Part shown: positions 19,818 to 60,488 of the stretch, piece by piece
Numbering within the stretch: the stretch's first letter is position 1
Layout: each line of letters begins with the position of its first letter
Source: Pavona decussata
Taxonomy: Eukaryota
Direction of reading: 5' to 3'
Assembly: GCA_977016875.1 (NCBI GenBank)
Contig: CDRNST010000027.1
Location: 1,426,001 to 1,490,000, forward strand
DNA: 64,000 nt
The notes under the pieces: generated by a model
Told to the model about the DNA's origin: nothing
The model's input: the letters and a program-made list of their open reading frames with translations, nothing else
Databases searched by the model: none
Made by a program: the position numbers and the translations under genes

Positions 19818-22471
19818 CTTCGCTTGGCACGGTTGTAGTTCTGCAGACTTTCTTGTTCCGTCCAACTGGGCCTTCAGTCTTCTAGTGTAATCCGTGTTTT
19901 CATAACCACAATATATATCATTGACTAGCCAATAAAATGCCTTCACAGTCAGATAACTTACTAAGGATGCCACCAGCTCTCCACTTAGACTTATGCTTTT
20001 TCCGCTAATTGATATTAGAAGTCAAAAACAAAGTATCACGTTCAGTTTGTCACGTTGTTATTACAAAACTTTTTTGTTTTTAAATGTTCAGCAGTTTCAG
20101 TACTTTAAGTCGAGAACGTAAACAGATTGGCTTTCAGTGGTTTGGAAAGAAAGAAACAAACACAGGGATGAATCAACAACAACCTTTGCTTAGAGTCAAG
20201 AAATATTTCCCACCGCAATATTGCCCTTTTGAGATCAAGTCTGTAACATTGTTGATATTTCTCACCAGTAGCTATTCAAGACAGATGCCGACACAGCATA
20301 TTACAAACAAGTCTTAATATTAAACGTCAAAAACAAGGCAGCGATCACGATCATTTTGTCTTGAATTTTTTGTGAGTTTCCGTACTTGAGATGATTGCGA
20401 AAACAGGTCGGCTCTGCTTTTTGAAATGAAATAAATCAAGATAAATTAGCTGATAAATCAACAGGAAATTCAATTATATTAGTCTAGAGGAATATTCCAT
20501 ACTACGCCATTGCGCTTAAAATTTTCAGATTGTTGATATAACTAGAAGTGATTTCAGAGTTCTCGAAGTAATTACATATACAAACAGAATATGAAACGTG
20601 GTCCGTTAGAATCTGTTGAACTTCTATATCTGCCCTAATAATAATGTCCGTATATAAGTGACAAAATGTGATTGAATTTACTGCAGACTTCTGTTGTCCA
20701 CCTCTTTATTGGCTAAACTGATGCGAGCAAAAGTTCATGGAAATTTCGCGGGGCAGAAAATAAAACCCAGCATGCACCAAGAGGGAAGAGTGAACTGGTC
20801 GGCGACAAAACAACAGACCGAGATGACTGAAGACGACATATGTTGTGTAGTCATACGGCAGCAAAGTGACTCGTGTCATTGCTTCTAGTCAATTCGTTCT
20901 TTATTTCGCAATCAACAAAGTATATTAAGAGTACAGTGCTTGTTATCAGTAACACTACTTTGTACTTGGAACAGCATAATTATTGTGTAACAGGAAAAGT
21001 TCATTCATGATGAGAATATTACGCAATACAGTACAACATACAAGCGAATTATATGGAATCATAGGGTAGGAGTTAAATATGGGCGCAAAGGCTTGTTCTT
21101 GGAGTCCTTAAGCTCCGCCCTAAGGAAGCATGCAGTGAATGAACGCTAGCCGTTCCCTAGGCCAAACTTGCCTTTTGTCGCATCCCCAAATTACAATGAG
21201 AGTTCTTATCATATATGTTAACGAACAGTCCAACTTTTTCTTCTGAAGGCAGCAGGAGGTTGCCGAGAATTCAGTCGAGTATTGGGCGTTTTCAAAATAA
21301 AAAAGTTTTATTACATCAGATTTTAAAGTGTTCTGCACAAATTTTATCATGAACTGTGATCGCCGAAACAGTAACTACCTGTAAAATATTATTGAGTAAT
21401 TGGAGTTTTACTTGAGCTGAGCACTTTCGGTAAATTTATTGTGCTGTTAATTTAATTAATATAAAATGTTTTCTCTTGTCTTTTTGTATAAACCCAATCA
21501 TAAAGTATCCAATAATTAAATTAATGTCGTGTCAATAAATATACTGGACGCCGGTTATGATAGAATTATAATCGAATTATAACTCGAGACCGTTCGCACG
21601 AGAGTCCTAATTAAGTAATTAAGGGTTAATAAAAGACGGATTATTTTGGCAAAACTCTAGGGGATATTCAAGGGTATTATTCCAGGGATACGGGATTGGA
21701 GATTAAAGAGAATCCCTGGGATATCGAGCATCAGATTTGGAGTACAAAAGATCTAAAATTGAAGGAATACGAGGCATAGTTAATGGAATACGATTGGCAA
21801 AATACCTCTGCCCCTTCCCTCCCCCCCCCCCCCCCCCTCCGCTTTATGACGCCTCACACCGGCCGATTTAGATTTAATCCTCCATCCTGATCTGATCATA
21901 TAATTACTTCAAACAACCTTTCTATTTGAGTTAGGTTGATTGATGTGATTTATACATTGTATAATTCAAACAAATAACGGCAATTGTAATTAACACAACC
22001 GTACTTGAGGCCGCGATATCGGGATCTGGCATGTGAACGAGGATTACGGGATTTGTTCCTTAATGGCCCCTGGGAATGAGGTTGGTTATCCGCAATAGTG
22101 GTCATGAAGGAATTCAATTGATCTTGAAGACAAGAATCGATTTCTAAGAAGTACATCAGGAAAACAACTCTGAAAAACATCTTGGAGTTGTTTTCTTGTT
22201 CTCTACTTCTTGCATTTGTCGGCGGGAAAAGGTTTATTGATTTCTAATGCAGACAATTTCCGTTCCGTGCTTGTTTCAAGTTTTAATTCAATATTTTTGA
22301 TTCAATAAAACTAGACATGCATTTACACGACGACTGAATTTTGTAATACACCAGTTCTTCTTTGCCAATATCAATGTAGGTAAAAAACCACACACTTCAA
22401 CGGAAGTGGTAAAATATATTTGGCATGTCATATCGAATAACAACCACGAGAAAAACAAGTTAAAATAACCT

Positions 22472-22620
22472 TATTTAATGATCTTGGCTCTCACGAGTAT
22501 CCTATAGCTAGCTCAGTGGTAGAGCGAATTAGTGATCGGAAGGTCTTAGGTTCGACGCCTGATAGGAGCACTTAATTTTTTTTTTTTTTTTTTTTTTTGA
22601 GTTCCGAATTTGCCTGTCTC
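22472..22620 (+). mobile_element. tRNA-derived repeat fragment (same family as 27185-27658)
   Basis: tagctcagtggtagagc...tcggaaggtcttaggttcgacgcctgataggagcac followed by an expanded T-run. Confidence 0.75.
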
Positions 22621-24177
22621 ACGGCATTGTCATTCTCAAGTTAAAATAAGTTACAAAAATGCTTGTTAATTTTTATATCTCTTGTTGGGTCATTTTTCGG
22701 TCCACCATAGGTAAACGCAATGTTAGTATTTGTCACAAATAGCATAGATGAGACTAATATAACTAGTAGGACAAATAGAAGTTGTTTTTAATAAGAAATG
22801 TTTTTGTGGTATTTAAAAAATAATCTGAATTAGCTGAATAACGCTGCACTGCTTTACAGTCACGCCACTTGATTCTTCAATTCTTTTGCACAGTTAAAAT
22901 GCATCTTCCATGCTAACTTTGTTTTCATAAGCGCAATATTGTACAGCTTAGTGAAGGTACCAATATTGACTTCCGGCCCTTTAATTAATAGTAACTGAGT
23001 TATACGTATCCTCTGCCTTGAACCTCTAATTAATCAAAAACGTGTTTAGCCTTTTTCGTATGCTCAATGAAATGCACCTATCGCCATTCGAGATCTTTGG
23101 TTAGGGTGGGGATCGGGGCTTGAAATGTGAACGAGACACATAGGTAAAAAATGTGGACAATCTTAGAAATTTGATCATAGTGACCTGCTGTAATATCTTT
23201 ACTGCTCAGATTTCTTTATTGTGTTCAGTTAAGTTAAGTAGTGCACTTAAAGTTGAAGTTCCCGCTATGCACTTGCACAAACCAATTTTCAAGCTCATTG
23301 TATCTGGAGTGGCCGATACGAGATAATGTATTTCCGTTATCTTATTTCTCCAGTCGACGGTAGCTGAATTCAGAGGCCTGACAAACGTGAATGTTCAAAA
23401 TACACATTATATTGAAACGTTTAGCAATCAGTTCAAAAACATTTTAGTTAAGTACTTCATTTGCTGAAATTAAACGGAAAGCAAATTACATACCCACTAT
23501 GTCGAAAAGAAAAGTAATTTTGTGCTGGAACTTTATTGTACAAACATCGAAACCTTTTGCATACCTTGAATGTGATTTGACAATCAGTTCGATTTCATTA
23601 AAAGTAAAGCATTATTTCCTCCAATATGAACTTTATCTCTGCTTAATCTTTTACTCAGACGCTCTATACACAAATGGAATGTCTGCCCAGGAAAGCGCCT
23701 TTAATCAATTCTGTCCATCGACAGGCGAGTACAAGATTGGATGGTTTGCCTCCGTTTACTCAAGCAGCAAGATTGTAACGTCGTTTTCTAAGTCATTTAA
23801 AGGTAACTGATATCTTTGATAAACCAAAAGAGACAAAACTCTGAAATTTTGAACGCTAATCATAAGAGCTTAGCAATGCTTTTTTGTTACATAACCTTAT
23901 TTATTCGTTAGATTCTGTCATTTCTTTCCAAAGTGCTTTGTCTAACTCTATGAGCCAGTGAGGCAATCAATATGGCCACGTCTACAAATAGCATGTGAAA
24001 TTCTGAAGTCGCGTGTGTTTAATGCTATTCATTCTGGCAAAATAAACGAGAGAAAGCGAGGACAAAAGGACTGACCCCTGTTAATATTATAACAAAGATT
24101 CTTAACTGAGCAATTCTACCAGATAACGAAATATTTAGAATCAAGGCCAGAAGGTCATAGCTTTTTTACCAAAAATA

Positions 24178-24759: not shown

Positions 24760-25000
24760 TAAATGAATAAATGAACATTTCACAGTATAATACTGTGTAA
24801 TATGACTGTCGACACACACCTCACATAATAACAAAAACATCTTGTTCCGAGCAGGAATCGAACCTTCGTCTTCCCGGATGCTGGTCGGGCGTGATGACCG
24901 CTAGACCCTCGAGGCAACAATGCTGAACGTGGCAACTAATCGAAGTAAACACTGAGAATCGTCCATAGACCATTCCACAGGACGTTTTGTTTTCGAGGTA
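24760..25000 (-). mobile_element. Diverged tRNA-derived repeat
   Basis: Reverse strand has ggtctagcggtcatcacgcccgaccagcatccgggaagacgaaggttcgattcctgctcgg (A-box-like and B-box GGTTCGATTCC). Confidence 0.55.
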
Positions 25001-26825: not shown

Positions 26826-26985
26826 AGTTTCTTGGTCATCCAGTGATGCGTAGAAAACATTTTCACTAACGAGAGCAGAAACCTCCCTTAAAGCAGAGTG
26901 TACAATTGACACAAACATTTTTTTCTTTCCTTTTTTTGCAGTTTTATATATAAAAACAACGATACTTGTGAATTGTTCGTGGCTA

Positions 26986-27029
26986 GTCTGACGCGGCGTT
27001 TCGTCTCGGCCATGAGACTCTTCAGAGAC
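26986..27029 (-). ncRNA. Type I hammerhead ribozyme (minimal, near-palindromic stem III)
   Basis: Minus strand: GUCU-CUGAAGA-GUCUC(AUGGCC)GAGAC-GAAAC-GCCGC-GUC/AGAC. All core nucleotides are present; stem I is GUCU:AGAC; predicted cleavage is between 26990 and 26989. Confidence 0.85.
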
Positions 27030-27184
27030 CTTTAGAATTTGTAGCCAAACTAGTTGAGTATCACGGTCAAAGTCCCGTTCGCAAATTCAAGATGTTTGCA
27101 GTCTGGCCCTCTATCGCAGAGACGAAACGCCCCGTCAGACTAGCCACGAACAATTCACAAGTATTTGACAATTTTTCAATTCTT

Positions 27185-27658
27185 GAGAGAAATGTGATGG
27201 TATATTTCCAGCCTGGTGAATGAATGAGAATGATGATTATTCAAGAAAGTGACGCAGGCATACTCGGAAAAAAGAAATCCGAGTGCTCCTATCAGGAGTC
27301 GAACCTAAGACCTTCCGATTACTAGTTCGGATGCTCTACCAAGAAATTTCTTTTTTCCGAGTATGCCTGCGTCACTTTCTTGAATAATCATCATTCTCAT
27401 TCATTCACCAGGCTGGAAATATACCATCACATTTCTCTCATATACCACACGTTCGACATTCAAATCCTAGCAGTATGCAGGATGTTTGTCCCATGAACCT
27501 AGTTTAATGACCTTAGCACCCACGAGTCTCCTGTAGCTCAGTGGTAGAGCATCCGAACTAGTAATCGGAAGGTCTTAGGTTCGACTCCTGATAGGAGCAC
27601 TCGGATTTCTTTTTTCCGAGTATGCCTGCGTCACTTTCTTGAATAATCATCATTCTCA
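27185..27658 (+). mobile_element. tRNA(Thr-AGT-like)-containing element: inverted segment plus ~1.2 tandem copies of a 259-bp unit, with 14-16-bp TSD
   Basis: TSD caatttttcaattctt at 27169-27184 and 27657-27672. 27185-27341 is the reverse complement of unit sequence; direct repeat 27346-27399 / 27605-27658; tRNA-like cloverleaf at 27527-27599 with A and B boxes. Confidence 0.85.
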
Positions 27659-27675
27659 ATTTTTCAATTCTTTAT

Positions 27676-27901
27676 TGTATAAAAACAACGATACTTAAAT
27701 TAAAACTTGTATAAAGTTTCCCAAACGCCGATATTTCCCGTTCGAAACAGCTCTAGATATTTCGACTCCAAAAATGTCTTTCCTTTTTTGCAGTTTTGTA
27801 TATAAAAACAACGATACTTAAATTAAAACTTGTATAAAGCTTCCCAAAGGCCGATATTTCCCGTTCGAAACAGCTCTGGATATTTTGACTCAAAAAATGT
27901 C
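27676..27901 (+). repeat. ~123-bp tandem duplication; the second copy retains the empty insertion site
   Basis: 27777-27901 repeats 26924-26967 + 27697-27779 without the inserted elements. Confidence 0.85.
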
Positions 27902-28371
27902 GCTGTCGCGCACAGGCAAAACGTTACCTGCAAGCCGTACGTGACGTCACTTAACTTTGCAACAAAACCAAAATGGCGGTGGAGTAAAGCTATTTCGCAA
28001 AACATGCAGTCGTTTCTTTTGAGCTGGAGTGCCTAATAAATAATTTCTTACAAAGACATGGAGGAATTATAAAACTGCTTAAGCTTCTTCATACTCAGAT
28101 GATTTTGGGACAATAGCGTTACGCCCTGAGAAAACGATCAAACACTTTCGTTCAGCATTGTGTTTGTCTCACAAAACTGACATGGGGTTTTTTAACGAGC
28201 AAACAATGTTTGTTCTTTCTGAAGCTCTCGGAGAAACTGCTCTCTAAGCATGGTCTACTTTCGCACGATATCATATTTTTCCATGCCCATCTCTTTCTTA
28301 ATTTCCGAAATTGCCTGACTTCGTTTCTGCCTGTTGTGGTAGTCTTCGTGTTGCACGTAGAAGAAAGAAAG

Positions 28372-28682
28372 ATTTTTTTCAGGCTTTCTTTTCGCAACTG
28401 CTCAAGTTGCGTACTATAACTGCGAGGATCTTTCTTCTATTTGATCTTTCATCCGCAGTTCAAAATATATGTTTCATATTTCTACATTCATTTATTCATC
28501 CTTCACGGGTATGTTACGAACTCACAATATGACCAGCTCCCAGATGGCTTGATAGCTCAGTTGGTGGAGCACTGCACCGGGATCGCGGAGGTCATGGGTT
28601 CGAATCCCGTTTCAAGCTTTCTTTTCGCAACCGCTTAAGTTGCGTACTAACTGCGTACTACTGAGGATCTTTCTTCTATTTA
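28372..28682 (+). mobile_element. Second tRNA-containing permuted tandem unit (~233-bp period)
   Basis: gctttcttttcgcaac at 28383 and 28616; tRNA-like module at 28546-28617 (tagctcagttgg, ggttcgaatccc, acceptor stem gcttga/tcaagc). A diverged minus-strand fragment lies at ~52985-53105. Confidence 0.75.
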
Positions 28683-31824: not shown

Positions 31825-33696
31825 TTAAAGGTAGGGAGATAAGATGGATAAGAAGATAGTTTCTACGATGCAGACACTAATACATATTCAAACTGTAGAA
31901 TAAAGATAAATTGAGGCCGTGATATGCAGGTTTACTGAGAGCGAGTGAAAGTTGGAGAACCACTAAGAGAACGATCGCGAGTCTGACAAGCCGAGAAAGA
32001 GCGACTCAACTTAAGGAAAGGTATGAAAGGCTTTTATGATTCAATTACCTATAAAGTATCTGTCGGCTAAGTTCGCTTTCGTCGTCAAAGGACTGTTTAT
32101 CTTCCGACGAGCAAAATCGTCTATCGTGTGAGTATAATTCAAAACGCTTTCTCACAAGTAACTGCCGTGATAGCTTGCAATATTAGAGGTCGGTTGATCT
32201 CATGCCCATCACTGAAGTTCAGTGATGTAACCTACGCCGGATTAAAGCTAACTCTTCATCGCTTTGAGAACCAAACCAAAACTGAATCTCTATTGTCTCA
32301 AGTTACCCTTGACGCAAGACATCTAAACCCTGGCTGGAATTAGAGCCTCGCGGAGTCACTGAAACAATTTATTGCTGCGCTCGTCTCGTCTCAGATCAAA
32401 TTTGTGCGAATGCTGTACTTTAGATGACACCCGCTGCTTACAAAATTAATTTTGCAATGTGATTATAATCCTCCTTCTGTCATCAACGCATTTGCCGACA
32501 AGCGTCTATTCCTTAGCACGCTTGGGATTCAACTTTCCCATTCTTTCGCTTCTTTCCCACACTTTCACTTTCTCAAGGGAAACTCTGTTGTTCAGTCTTC
32601 ACATATCCAAGCTCCAGACCAGTTATTTTAAAGTCCCATTTCATCGAATAATCGAAACACCGTGGATTTTATGAATATCGATGAGCTGATATCTGTGAAA
32701 AGTCTAGAAGTGTCACTACCCATTAAGTTTCGGCTCGGTTGGTTATAGATGTAGCTAGATAAAGCGTGCAAAAATTATTCATTGAAAGCGATACAACGAA
32801 ATTTTGGAGTCGCGCCAGAATGCAGCAAAACGGTTAAAACACATTCTAAAACCATCGGGGATATTCTAAAACGGCGATATTCTGGCAATATTAAGCAGTT
32901 TTAGTCATGTTCGTGCCATTTCCTCTCCAAATAGAATTAAGGTGACAATATTAAACAAAAATTGTTTATTATTCAAAAATGTTTATAGCTCATTTTATCA
33001 TTTTCTTTAAAATTAAATACAGTAAATCAAAATTTGTTTCAAAGTACTTAACTTTCGCCGGTTCTATTCCAGGTTATAAAATTAAAGGTGGGTTGCATAG
33101 TTACGGTTCAAGAATGCAAAGGTACACGGAAATTTCCATGTACCTTTCGACAACTTTTGCTAAAGGTAAACGGAAAATTCCATGTATCTTTGCATTCTAG
33201 AACCGTACCTTGAAGCAAAAGATTTTGATGGATACACTCTGTTGCTGGAGGAACATTGACTACAGTTTTTTATATGTATTTTGCCATTTTTTTAAACTTG
33301 GCAAATATATCATCTTAATAAAATCTACATCTTAATATTTTTTTGGAGTTTTTGAACAATAATGGCGAAACATTGTGAATTTTTGCCCTGTTTTCACTGC
33401 TTATGGCAGAAAACAACAACTTCAGTTCAATTTGTGCCACTTGCTCGTCGGTAAAATTTGCACTTTTTTTAATTTGTTTACCCCCACATAATACATCACG
33501 GACATCGATTACTGTGAGAAAAGATCAAAATTCACTTATTTTTGAAATGCTGAAATTTTGTAATAGTTGTCAATTATACATACAAAAAGCTGTTTTCTTA
33601 CCCTCCGTCCTTGTAAACAGGCCCTAAACTGGACAAAAATAAAATGTATATCATAGATGAACCTTTCAGTCACTGACACAGGCATGTTGGAAAAAA

Positions 33697-60170: not shown

Positions 60171-60488
60171 ATAGCCGACGTTTCGGCGTCATCGTGACAC
60201 CACTCTCAAGGCGGGATAAATTCATGCGAAGATTTGATTTCTATACTTTACAGTCTCTACAAATTAGCATATTAACGATGAATCACAAGTTCTTCAGGTG
60301 AATACCTTTGCGCGCATCGAGTCTGTTCAAATCGAGACTCAATTCGCGCAAAGGTATTCACCTGAAGAACTTGTGATTCATCGTTAATATGCTAATTTGT
60401 AGAGACTGTAAAGTATAGAAATCAAATCTTCGCATGAATTTATCCCGCCTTGAGAGTGGTGTCACGATGACGCCGAAACGTCGGCTAT
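60171..60488. mobile_element. Perfect 144-bp-arm fold-back of a PLE 3' tail with hammerhead-like motifs at both outer ends
   Basis: 60171-60314 is the exact reverse complement of 60345-60488; the centre encodes DSIRAKVFT* / DSMRAKVFT*; motif gcc-TTGAGAG-t-ggtgtca(cga)tgacgcc-GAAAC-GTC-ggc. Confidence 0.8.

Follow-up and report, generated by a model that had tools for sequence, protein, structure and literature searches.

A 259-bp repeat family with an internal tRNA-like module, met in a 64,000-nucleotide stretch of the Pavona decussata genome (hereafter, the window), appears to be a young, ribozyme-free, non-autonomous, SINE-like retroelement that is mobilised in trans by the reverse transcriptase/GIY-YIG endonuclease of a resident Penelope-like element (PLE). 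A probability of roughly 0.85 is given to this reading, which is drawn from comparisons at the sequence level. PLE-dependent mobilisation had been proposed in an earlier note on the window, and this part of the note is upheld by the consistent pairing of one short with one long end in two-armed copies, by the length of their target site duplications (TSDs), by their AT-rich targets, and by the agreement of all these with an autonomous PLE family of the same genome (family A). The polymerase III (Pol III) origin that the same note envisaged for the template fared less well.

Structure of the insertion in the window

The insert at window positions 27185-27656 (472 bp) is bracketed by an exact 16-bp direct repeat, CAATTTTTCAATTCTT (Table 1). 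A single base at the left boundary and two (CA) at the right one could equally be element sequence, which places the true duplication at 13-16 bp, in line with the 14-16 bp first described. When the unit (259 bp) is numbered so that position 1 is window 27346, the insert resolves into two head-to-head arms. The inverted arm has as its outer (left) end the long start site, L (unit 94-95), and contains a partial inverted tRNA-like module at about 27284-27341; an inverted segment had been noted here before and is present, although it measures 158 nt and not 157. The direct arm amounts to about 1.2 copies of the unit, as had also been claimed, and on its outer side (right) it ends with the short start site, S, which reads ...CATTCTCA (unit 52-54). 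It stops at unit 54, as do 19 other two-armed copies, and it terminates in this sequence with neither an A-tail nor a LINE-derived 3' end. Within the true limits of the insert there are zero mismatches between the repeated copies, and those reported by the repeat search fall outside the true ends. Together with the 97-100% identity of copies across the genome, this agrees with the recent insertion suggested in the note.

The geometry of the window insert is far beyond chance, and it recurs at 40 examined loci of the same genome. Additionally, one contig assembled from a public run joins 27171 to 27661 and so represents the uninterrupted target; this contig may be a paralogue, the flank being itself a repeat.

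Table 1. Features of the window insertion and of the sequence that it interrupts (window coordinates; S and L, short and long start sites).
Feature	Position	Strand	Evidence
Host: two-armed mini-insertion of a hammerhead-bearing, 218-bp PLE-type family	26968..27168	.	inverted repeat I3; arrays of the 218-bp-period family
Type I hammerhead motif of the host mini-insertion	26986..27029	-	Rfam RF00163, 28.9 bits, E 0.0013, below the 34-bit cut-off
Left TSD copy (CAATTTTTCAATTCTT)	27169..27184	.	exact 16-bp repeat of 27657-27672
Inverted arm, reverse complement of unit 197-259 + 1-95	27185..27341 (start 27184/5)	-	inverted repeats I1 and I2, 98-100% complementary; blastn phase 95 to 197 (L011)
Filler AGAA (4 nt) at the head-to-head arm junction	27342..27345	.	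read from the sequence
Direct arm, unit 1-259 + 1-54	27346..27658	+	direct repeat D3, 259-bp spacing; 100% match to genomic units
Internal copy of the tail interval, S (unit 54 = 27399) to L (unit 94-99 = 27439-27444)	27399..27444	+	end positions of 40 copies
tRNA-like module, Thr(AGU)-like	27527..27599	+	Rfam RF00005, 49.6 bits, E 3e-8, cut-off 29
Hairpin ACTCGG / CCGAGT, loop with TTTCTTTTTT, T6 at 27610-27615	27599..27621	+	read from the sequence; predicted in folds
Right TSD copy	27657..27672	.	pairs with 27169-27184

The interrupted sequence is itself an insertion, of a PLE-type family with a 218-bp period and a hammerhead motif, and it resumes to about 27683 once the tRNA element is removed. 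Ends in this 218-bp family fall into two classes, at reference positions of about 191-196 and 228-230 (about 37 nt apart), and the target of the tRNA element is the roughly 37-nt terminal extension, or tail, of the host mini-insertion. The proposed insertion into a Penelope tail therefore holds, the tail being that of a hammerhead-bearing PLE-type mini-insertion. The same one-short, one-long end rule applies to the 218-bp family as to the tRNA family, and its window copy has a 13-19 bp duplication. In the assembly (G000), the 218-bp family also forms retrozyme-like tandem and fold-back arrays, for instance at C177:538498-540244.

Several other repeats were observed in the window. A 123-bp tandem repeat lies directly to the right of the insert (27671-27916, two copies 93% identical), with a partial third copy to the left of the hammerhead mini-insertion (26927-26967). 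At 33104-33205, a near-perfect long hairpin matches miRNA-precursor models on both strands, well below their cut-offs, and looks like a fold-back or MITE-type repeat. Finally, a long perfect fold-back at 60171-60488 carries the GAAACGTC hammerhead-like half-motif in its arms.

Ends, arms and targets across the genome

In the genome searched (602 Mb, 1,180 contigs), about 1,490 first-look candidates were flagged, at least 170 sequences match the unit with 97-100% identity, and 40 loci were fetched and analysed. Tabulation of phase, TSD and inversion over these 40 copies gave a PLE-type geometry. Two arms are present at 28 loci (70%), always in the order (-)(+), with the left arm reverse-complemented and the right arm direct, such that they stand head-to-head with both 3' ends facing outward. 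The outer ends lie at two fixed places, S as described above and L, which reads ...TTTCTCTCA(TAT) (unit 94-99). One S and one L end were found in 27/27 complete two-armed copies, and the interval between the two sites (41-45 nt) thus forms a tail that extends the insertion at one end only. The single-armed copies (n=12) end at S in eight cases and at L in three, and one is a fragment. The inner breakpoints, in contrast, are arbitrary, with 1-7 nt of overlap or 1-12 nt of filler at the arm junctions. Arms measure from 42 to >1,100 nt, or 0.2-4.4 units, and cross unit boundaries seamlessly.

The TSDs of two-armed copies are 11-16 bp long, with a mode of 13. On the strand that is cut, in the 5' to 3' direction, the bases before each nick are T-rich, (A/T)T(T/G), and the S-side primer mostly ends in TG or T, which is complementary to the template CA at 53-54 and gives 1-2 nt of microhomology. 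The AT content of the targets is 73%, compared with 62-64% in adjoining sequence. For one insertion (L032), a paralogous empty site was found that has a single copy of its duplicated sequence. The right flank of another locus, L012, and the flanks of L032 are paralogous repeats, and L012 holds the L032 empty site beside an expanded (ACAT)n microsatellite. Homing into PLE tails was considered and rejected, in that only the window copy (1/40) lies in a PLE-type repeat and the other flanks are mostly unique. At a further locus (L056; G000 C144:4519322-4523780), the tRNA unit forms a 17-unit array with one L end. This array behaves as a satellite would, its variant patterns recurring in neighbouring or spaced units in the way that subsequent unequal crossing-over would produce.

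Duplications of 11-16 bp and T-rich nicks are also typical of L1-type target-primed reverse transcription, and a tRNA-like module with A and B boxes is what an ordinary tRNA-derived SINE would carry. The family could accordingly be read as such a SINE that depends on a LINE and owes its inverted 5' part to L1-style twin priming. However, no A-tail, microsatellite tail or LINE-like 3' end was found among the 40 copies, and a head-first SINE structure was not met in any of them, the tRNA-like module being internal in every copy and the phases at which arms start being arbitrary. Mostly head-first copies with LINE-like tails, which the earlier note had named as the finding that would speak against it, were therefore not seen. 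Multi-unit tandems and the predominance of two-armed copies also argue against LINE mobilisation. Moreover, the inverted arm starts at a fixed template site, whereas twin priming predicts a random internal position beside the 5' end of the direct arm, and the one-short, one-long rule is a PLE trait. Mobilisation by a LINE is regarded as very improbable.

An origin at the DNA level is extremely improbable, whether as a fold-back or MITE-type DNA transposon or as a satellite re-inserted from extrachromosomal circles. Inverted arms within a flanking duplication would fit the first of these possibilities, and the C144 array, with its higher-order variant patterns, is satellite-like. Nevertheless, the outer ends are fixed but unequal and the inner breakpoints variable, unlike terminal inverted repeats of fixed length; the duplication is of no constant length (11-16 bp); each outer end is a 3' end of one and the same strand, that of tRNA sense; and re-integration of circles would not yield two fixed ends.

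Resident Penelope-like elements and the search for a partner

PLEs are abundant in this genome, with 933 GIY-YIG and 5,362 ORF candidates in at least four identity groups (family A and groups at 69, 65 and 57% identity). Many of the ORFs are open, up to 1,139 aa, and copies are 97-98% identical. In the autonomous family A (L057-L068), the stop codon is closely followed by a hammerhead motif. The copies fall into two end classes about 85 nt apart, one terminating about 175-180 nt and the other about 260 nt past the stop. The two-armed copies of family A (n=3) have one short and one long end each and duplications of 9-11 bp. Since the tRNA family follows the same rules as these two resident PLE-type families, family A and the 218-bp hammerhead family, mobilisation by a PLE is well supported. 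A separate PLE family was observed as a tandem array at C36:2795091-2863445, with a period of about 3.78 kb and open frames of 1,100 aa.

An autonomous PLE sharing the 3' module of the unit (unit 19-99) was not found in a comparison that covered, among the autonomous resident PLEs, the 3' ends of family A. The unit has no similarity to the 3' parts of the 12 family A loci, except for one more inserted copy of the unit itself (L057), and tblastn of the PLE ORF against the analysed loci and the window returned no matches beyond these 12 loci. A pattern search for a hammerhead followed by TCATTCTCA recovered a hammerhead family of at least 608 copies carrying ...CAGTCCTTCTCA. As observed in G000, this family carries ...GAAACGTCAGTCAAAGTCACCACAAACAGTCCTTCTCA, often in close (-)(+) pairs (e.g. 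C10:760188-760330 and C20:343382-343437). It has only ...CTTCTCA in common with site S, and the downstream sequence differs. It is no more than a lead to the partner, having no continuation into the tail of the unit and being absent from the fetched sequence.

The tRNA-like module and the T-run hairpin

The Thr-like tRNA module that the earlier note placed in the middle of the insert is confirmed by the Rfam match (Table 1), and ARAGORN detects it too. ARAGORN assigns no anticodon because the loop has eight bases (A+CUAGUAA); the anticodon is AGU if the loop is read as one of seven bases. Where a functional tRNA has a 7-nt anticodon loop and a paired acceptor stem, the module has the 8-nt loop and a U-C mismatch at acceptor pair 1-72, and it is on these grounds best described as a decayed, Thr(AGU)-like pseudo-tRNA. 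Both its A box TAGCTCAGTGG and its B box GGTTCGACTCC are intact, the latter without change in 121/122 units. Eleven nt after the module, a Pol III-terminator-like T6 run sits in the loop of a 6-bp hairpin, as the note had pointed out. A T run of at least five was kept in 125/125 examined units, and it is T6 or longer in 124/125.

Upstream of the module, the leader at unit 149-168 (window 27494-27513) includes a stretch that is partly antisense to the variable/T-arm region of the module and that competes with its cloverleaf in the predicted fold. This stretch may be the fossil of an old fold-back junction. An older, single-armed relative is present at window 22467-22640, with about 82% identity to unit 151-256. 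Its anticodon arm is decayed (module at 22467-22572), its T run has grown to about 29 T, and it ends in ...GTCATTCTCA between flanks that form an 11-12 bp duplication (AGTTAAAATAA). Two further tRNA-like modules, at 28546-28619(+) and 24842-24915(-), are unrelated to the unit; one of them, Pro(GGG)-like with 41.7 bits, has a short T-rich stretch (TTTCTTTT) after it.

The template RNA

Because both outer ends of two-armed copies are 3' ends in the tRNA sense, the copied RNA would have been of tRNA sense. Units within one insertion differ by 0-0.5%, through private singletons, compared with 1.3% between loci. Judging from this near-identity, each insertion appears to have been born from a homogeneous multi-unit template, which could be a circle, repeated jumps on one monomer, or a young array. 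The arms, which reach 4.4 units, agree with the multi-unit template of the earlier note.

In that note, a PLE reverse transcriptase was proposed to copy a circular or multimeric Pol III RNA, with tRNA processing in place of a ribozyme as in a retrozyme. In full, such a model would have the tRNA-like module as promoter, and RNase P and RNase Z would do the work of the hammerhead. The intact A and B boxes and the nearly invariant B box are consistent with this, as are arms longer than one unit, and the low divergence within insertions fits multiplication from a single monomer. Template jumping or young source arrays, however, explain homogeneous arms equally. The T run speaks against the model. 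Eukaryotic Pol III terminates at T runs such as T6, and yet the start sites are found past the run, S by 43 nt and L by 84 nt, and as many as four runs are traversed by an arm. With such a run in every unit, upstream of both start sites, Pol III is an unlikely source of the template. Starting at the tRNA promoter, it would produce an RNA of about 95 nt, unable to serve as template, although Pol III may still make a small RNA from the module.

The note also put forward tRNA processing as a substitute for a ribozyme. Ribozymes are not apparent in the unit, in that the tRNA is all that Rfam detects in the tandem array at E up to 10, and the same result was obtained for the window unit. The tRNA-like module is placed 59 nt upstream of S, a location roughly comparable to that of the hammerhead in the two resident families (about 50 nt from the short end in family A and about 20 nt in the 218-bp family), and this positional analogy is real. 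Functional replacement is nonetheless unsupported, for three reasons: the arms contain whole tRNA modules, such that the copied RNA would have been unprocessed; RNase P and RNase Z leave 5'-phosphate and 3'-OH ends, which are not RtcB substrates; and a published PLE does not need hammerhead cleavage in vitro (PMC11167929). Overall, copying of a circular or multimeric Pol III RNA, with tRNA processing in the role of the hammerhead, is considered unlikely, and PLE mobilisation of a transcript from another source is preferred.

The 3' module of the unit folds better than shuffled sequence (z of -3.4) and is predicted to form three hairpins. The first is the T-run hairpin, the second encloses S, and the third, with an AC-rich loop, immediately precedes L. 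This third hairpin, a predicted stem-loop GGAAAU / AUUUCU within the tail interval, recalls the AC-rich stem-loop at the start sites of an Anolis PLE, as far as a prediction can be compared with it. In contigs from public runs of unknown library type, depth over unit 100-259 exceeds that over unit 19-99 by a factor of 5-50, and loose contig ends converge on CATATACCAC, which begins at the L site. These observations suggest a superfamily in which a conserved leader-plus-tRNA core is combined with variable 3' modules. They also suggest a linear element that runs from about unit 95-100 round to L, in which a short CAUAU overlap could guide jumps. A broader proposal can be offered only tentatively and is rather improbable: PLEs may have SINE-like dependants that are built on a tRNA-like gene in place of a hammerhead and that carry variable 3' modules matched to different PLE partners. 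Such dependants would amplify one monomer, either through rolling-circle reverse transcription of a small circular RNA or through CAUAU-guided template jumping between the L site and the core start.

Proposed mechanism

Three steps can be read from the ends and junctions of the copies. An AT-rich target is nicked on both strands about 13 bp apart; the insertion consists of two head-to-head arms, each begun at S or L, with one of each; and the arms are joined through short microhomology or filler. Both nicked strands would act as primers for cDNA synthesis on a multi-unit RNA of tRNA sense, with the PLE protein probably recognising a structured 3' module. From the position of the T6 run upstream of S and L, the template would probably be made by a polymerase other than Pol III. 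The unit comprises a leader of ~80 nt, the tRNA-like module, the T-run hairpin, and a 3' module of ~80 nt. The tRNA-like module sits where the hammerhead lies in PLE 3' regions, and its candidate roles are TFIIIC/Pol III binding, a processing signal, or a fossil.

Much of this corresponds to published work on PLEs. Purified Anolis PLE protein cuts and extends both DNA strands in vitro (Frangieh 2024, PMC11167929), reverse transcription begins internally at two adjacent sites with 30-40 bp between them (the 'tail'), and AT-rich ATT sites are preferred (PMC11167929). PLE insertions typically show partial tandems, a neighbouring inverted copy truncated at its 5' end, and a tail of 30-40 bp, in many cases at one end only (Craig 2021, PMC8557442). 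Additionally, Penelope terminal repeats suffice to move foreign sequence in trans (Arkhipova 2013, PMC3846280). Two differences were noted. The tail of the tRNA family is 41-45 nt, slightly more than the published 30-40 nt (family A has about 85 nt), and the 1-2 nt of primer-template microhomology at S stands against the in vitro study, in which no such homology was seen (PMC11167929).

Relation to known elements

Endonuclease-positive PLEs of the Penelope/Poseidon type share with the tRNA family partial tandems, an inverted 5'-truncated copy, a one-end tail, AT-rich targets, and variable duplications, which are about 10-15 bp in PLEs and similar here. Use of two internal reverse transcription start sites from both nicked strands is also common to both, and the resident family A is alike in this respect. 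The tRNA family differs from PLEs in having no ORF, no hammerhead, and a 259-bp unit with a tRNA-like module, and its unit has no sequence similarity to family A, the one PLE family whose 3' end was read.

Metazoan non-LTR retrozymes are hammerhead tandem repeats of about 170-400 bp that have been proposed to be non-autonomous PLE derivatives (PMC7229834; bioRxiv 10.64898/2026.07.22.740005). They resemble the tRNA family in their short, low-GC tandem units, dispersed copies, duplications of >4 bp, and proposed PLE dependence, and a retrozyme-type example with the same two end classes (218-bp period, hammerhead) directly adjoins the tRNA insert. The tRNA unit differs from them in containing neither a hammerhead nor any other Rfam ribozyme, with the tRNA-like module in the corresponding position. 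With tRNA-derived SINEs, the family shares a decayed tRNA-like module with conserved A and B boxes, non-autonomy, high copy number, and a more conserved core with a more variable 3' module, the last being suggested by contig depth only. In contrast to SINEs, about 80 nt separate the tRNA from any inferred 5' end, the T6 run lies inside the element, there is no LINE-type or A-rich tail, and insertions are multi-unit and two-armed.

Non-autonomous dependants of PLEs are already known, in the form of hammerhead retrozymes, MRC1 and genes mobilised in trans. MRC1 of the Chlamys PLEs (Chlamydomonas, PMC8557442) and the Adineta vaga genes moved by Penelope terminal repeats (PMC3846280) are precedents for ORF-less or foreign cargo, often in head-to-tail multicopies. 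These cases share 3' ends with identified autonomous families, whereas the cargo of the tRNA family is a small-RNA-gene-like module and its partner is putative. No published tRNA-bearing PLE dependant was found in a search of the full-text literature (Repbase, Dfam and most subscription journals lay outside its scope).

Implications

Integration of PLEs is the least understood mechanism of retrotransposition, and the first in vitro study dates from 2024. In the tRNA family, natural insertions that are very young, short and easy to align are available by the dozen, and they show in vivo the features seen with a PLE in vitro. The strict one-short, one-long rule constrains models of integration, for example that of a dimeric complex engaging two sites. 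If the proposed reading is correct, a hammerhead would be dispensable in a PLE dependant, with positional replacement by a tRNA-like module, and the parasitism known from SINEs and LINEs would extend to PLEs. For annotation, it would account for a 'satellite' with a tRNA inside, to which standard pipelines would wrongly give the label of SINE, satellite or fold-back element.
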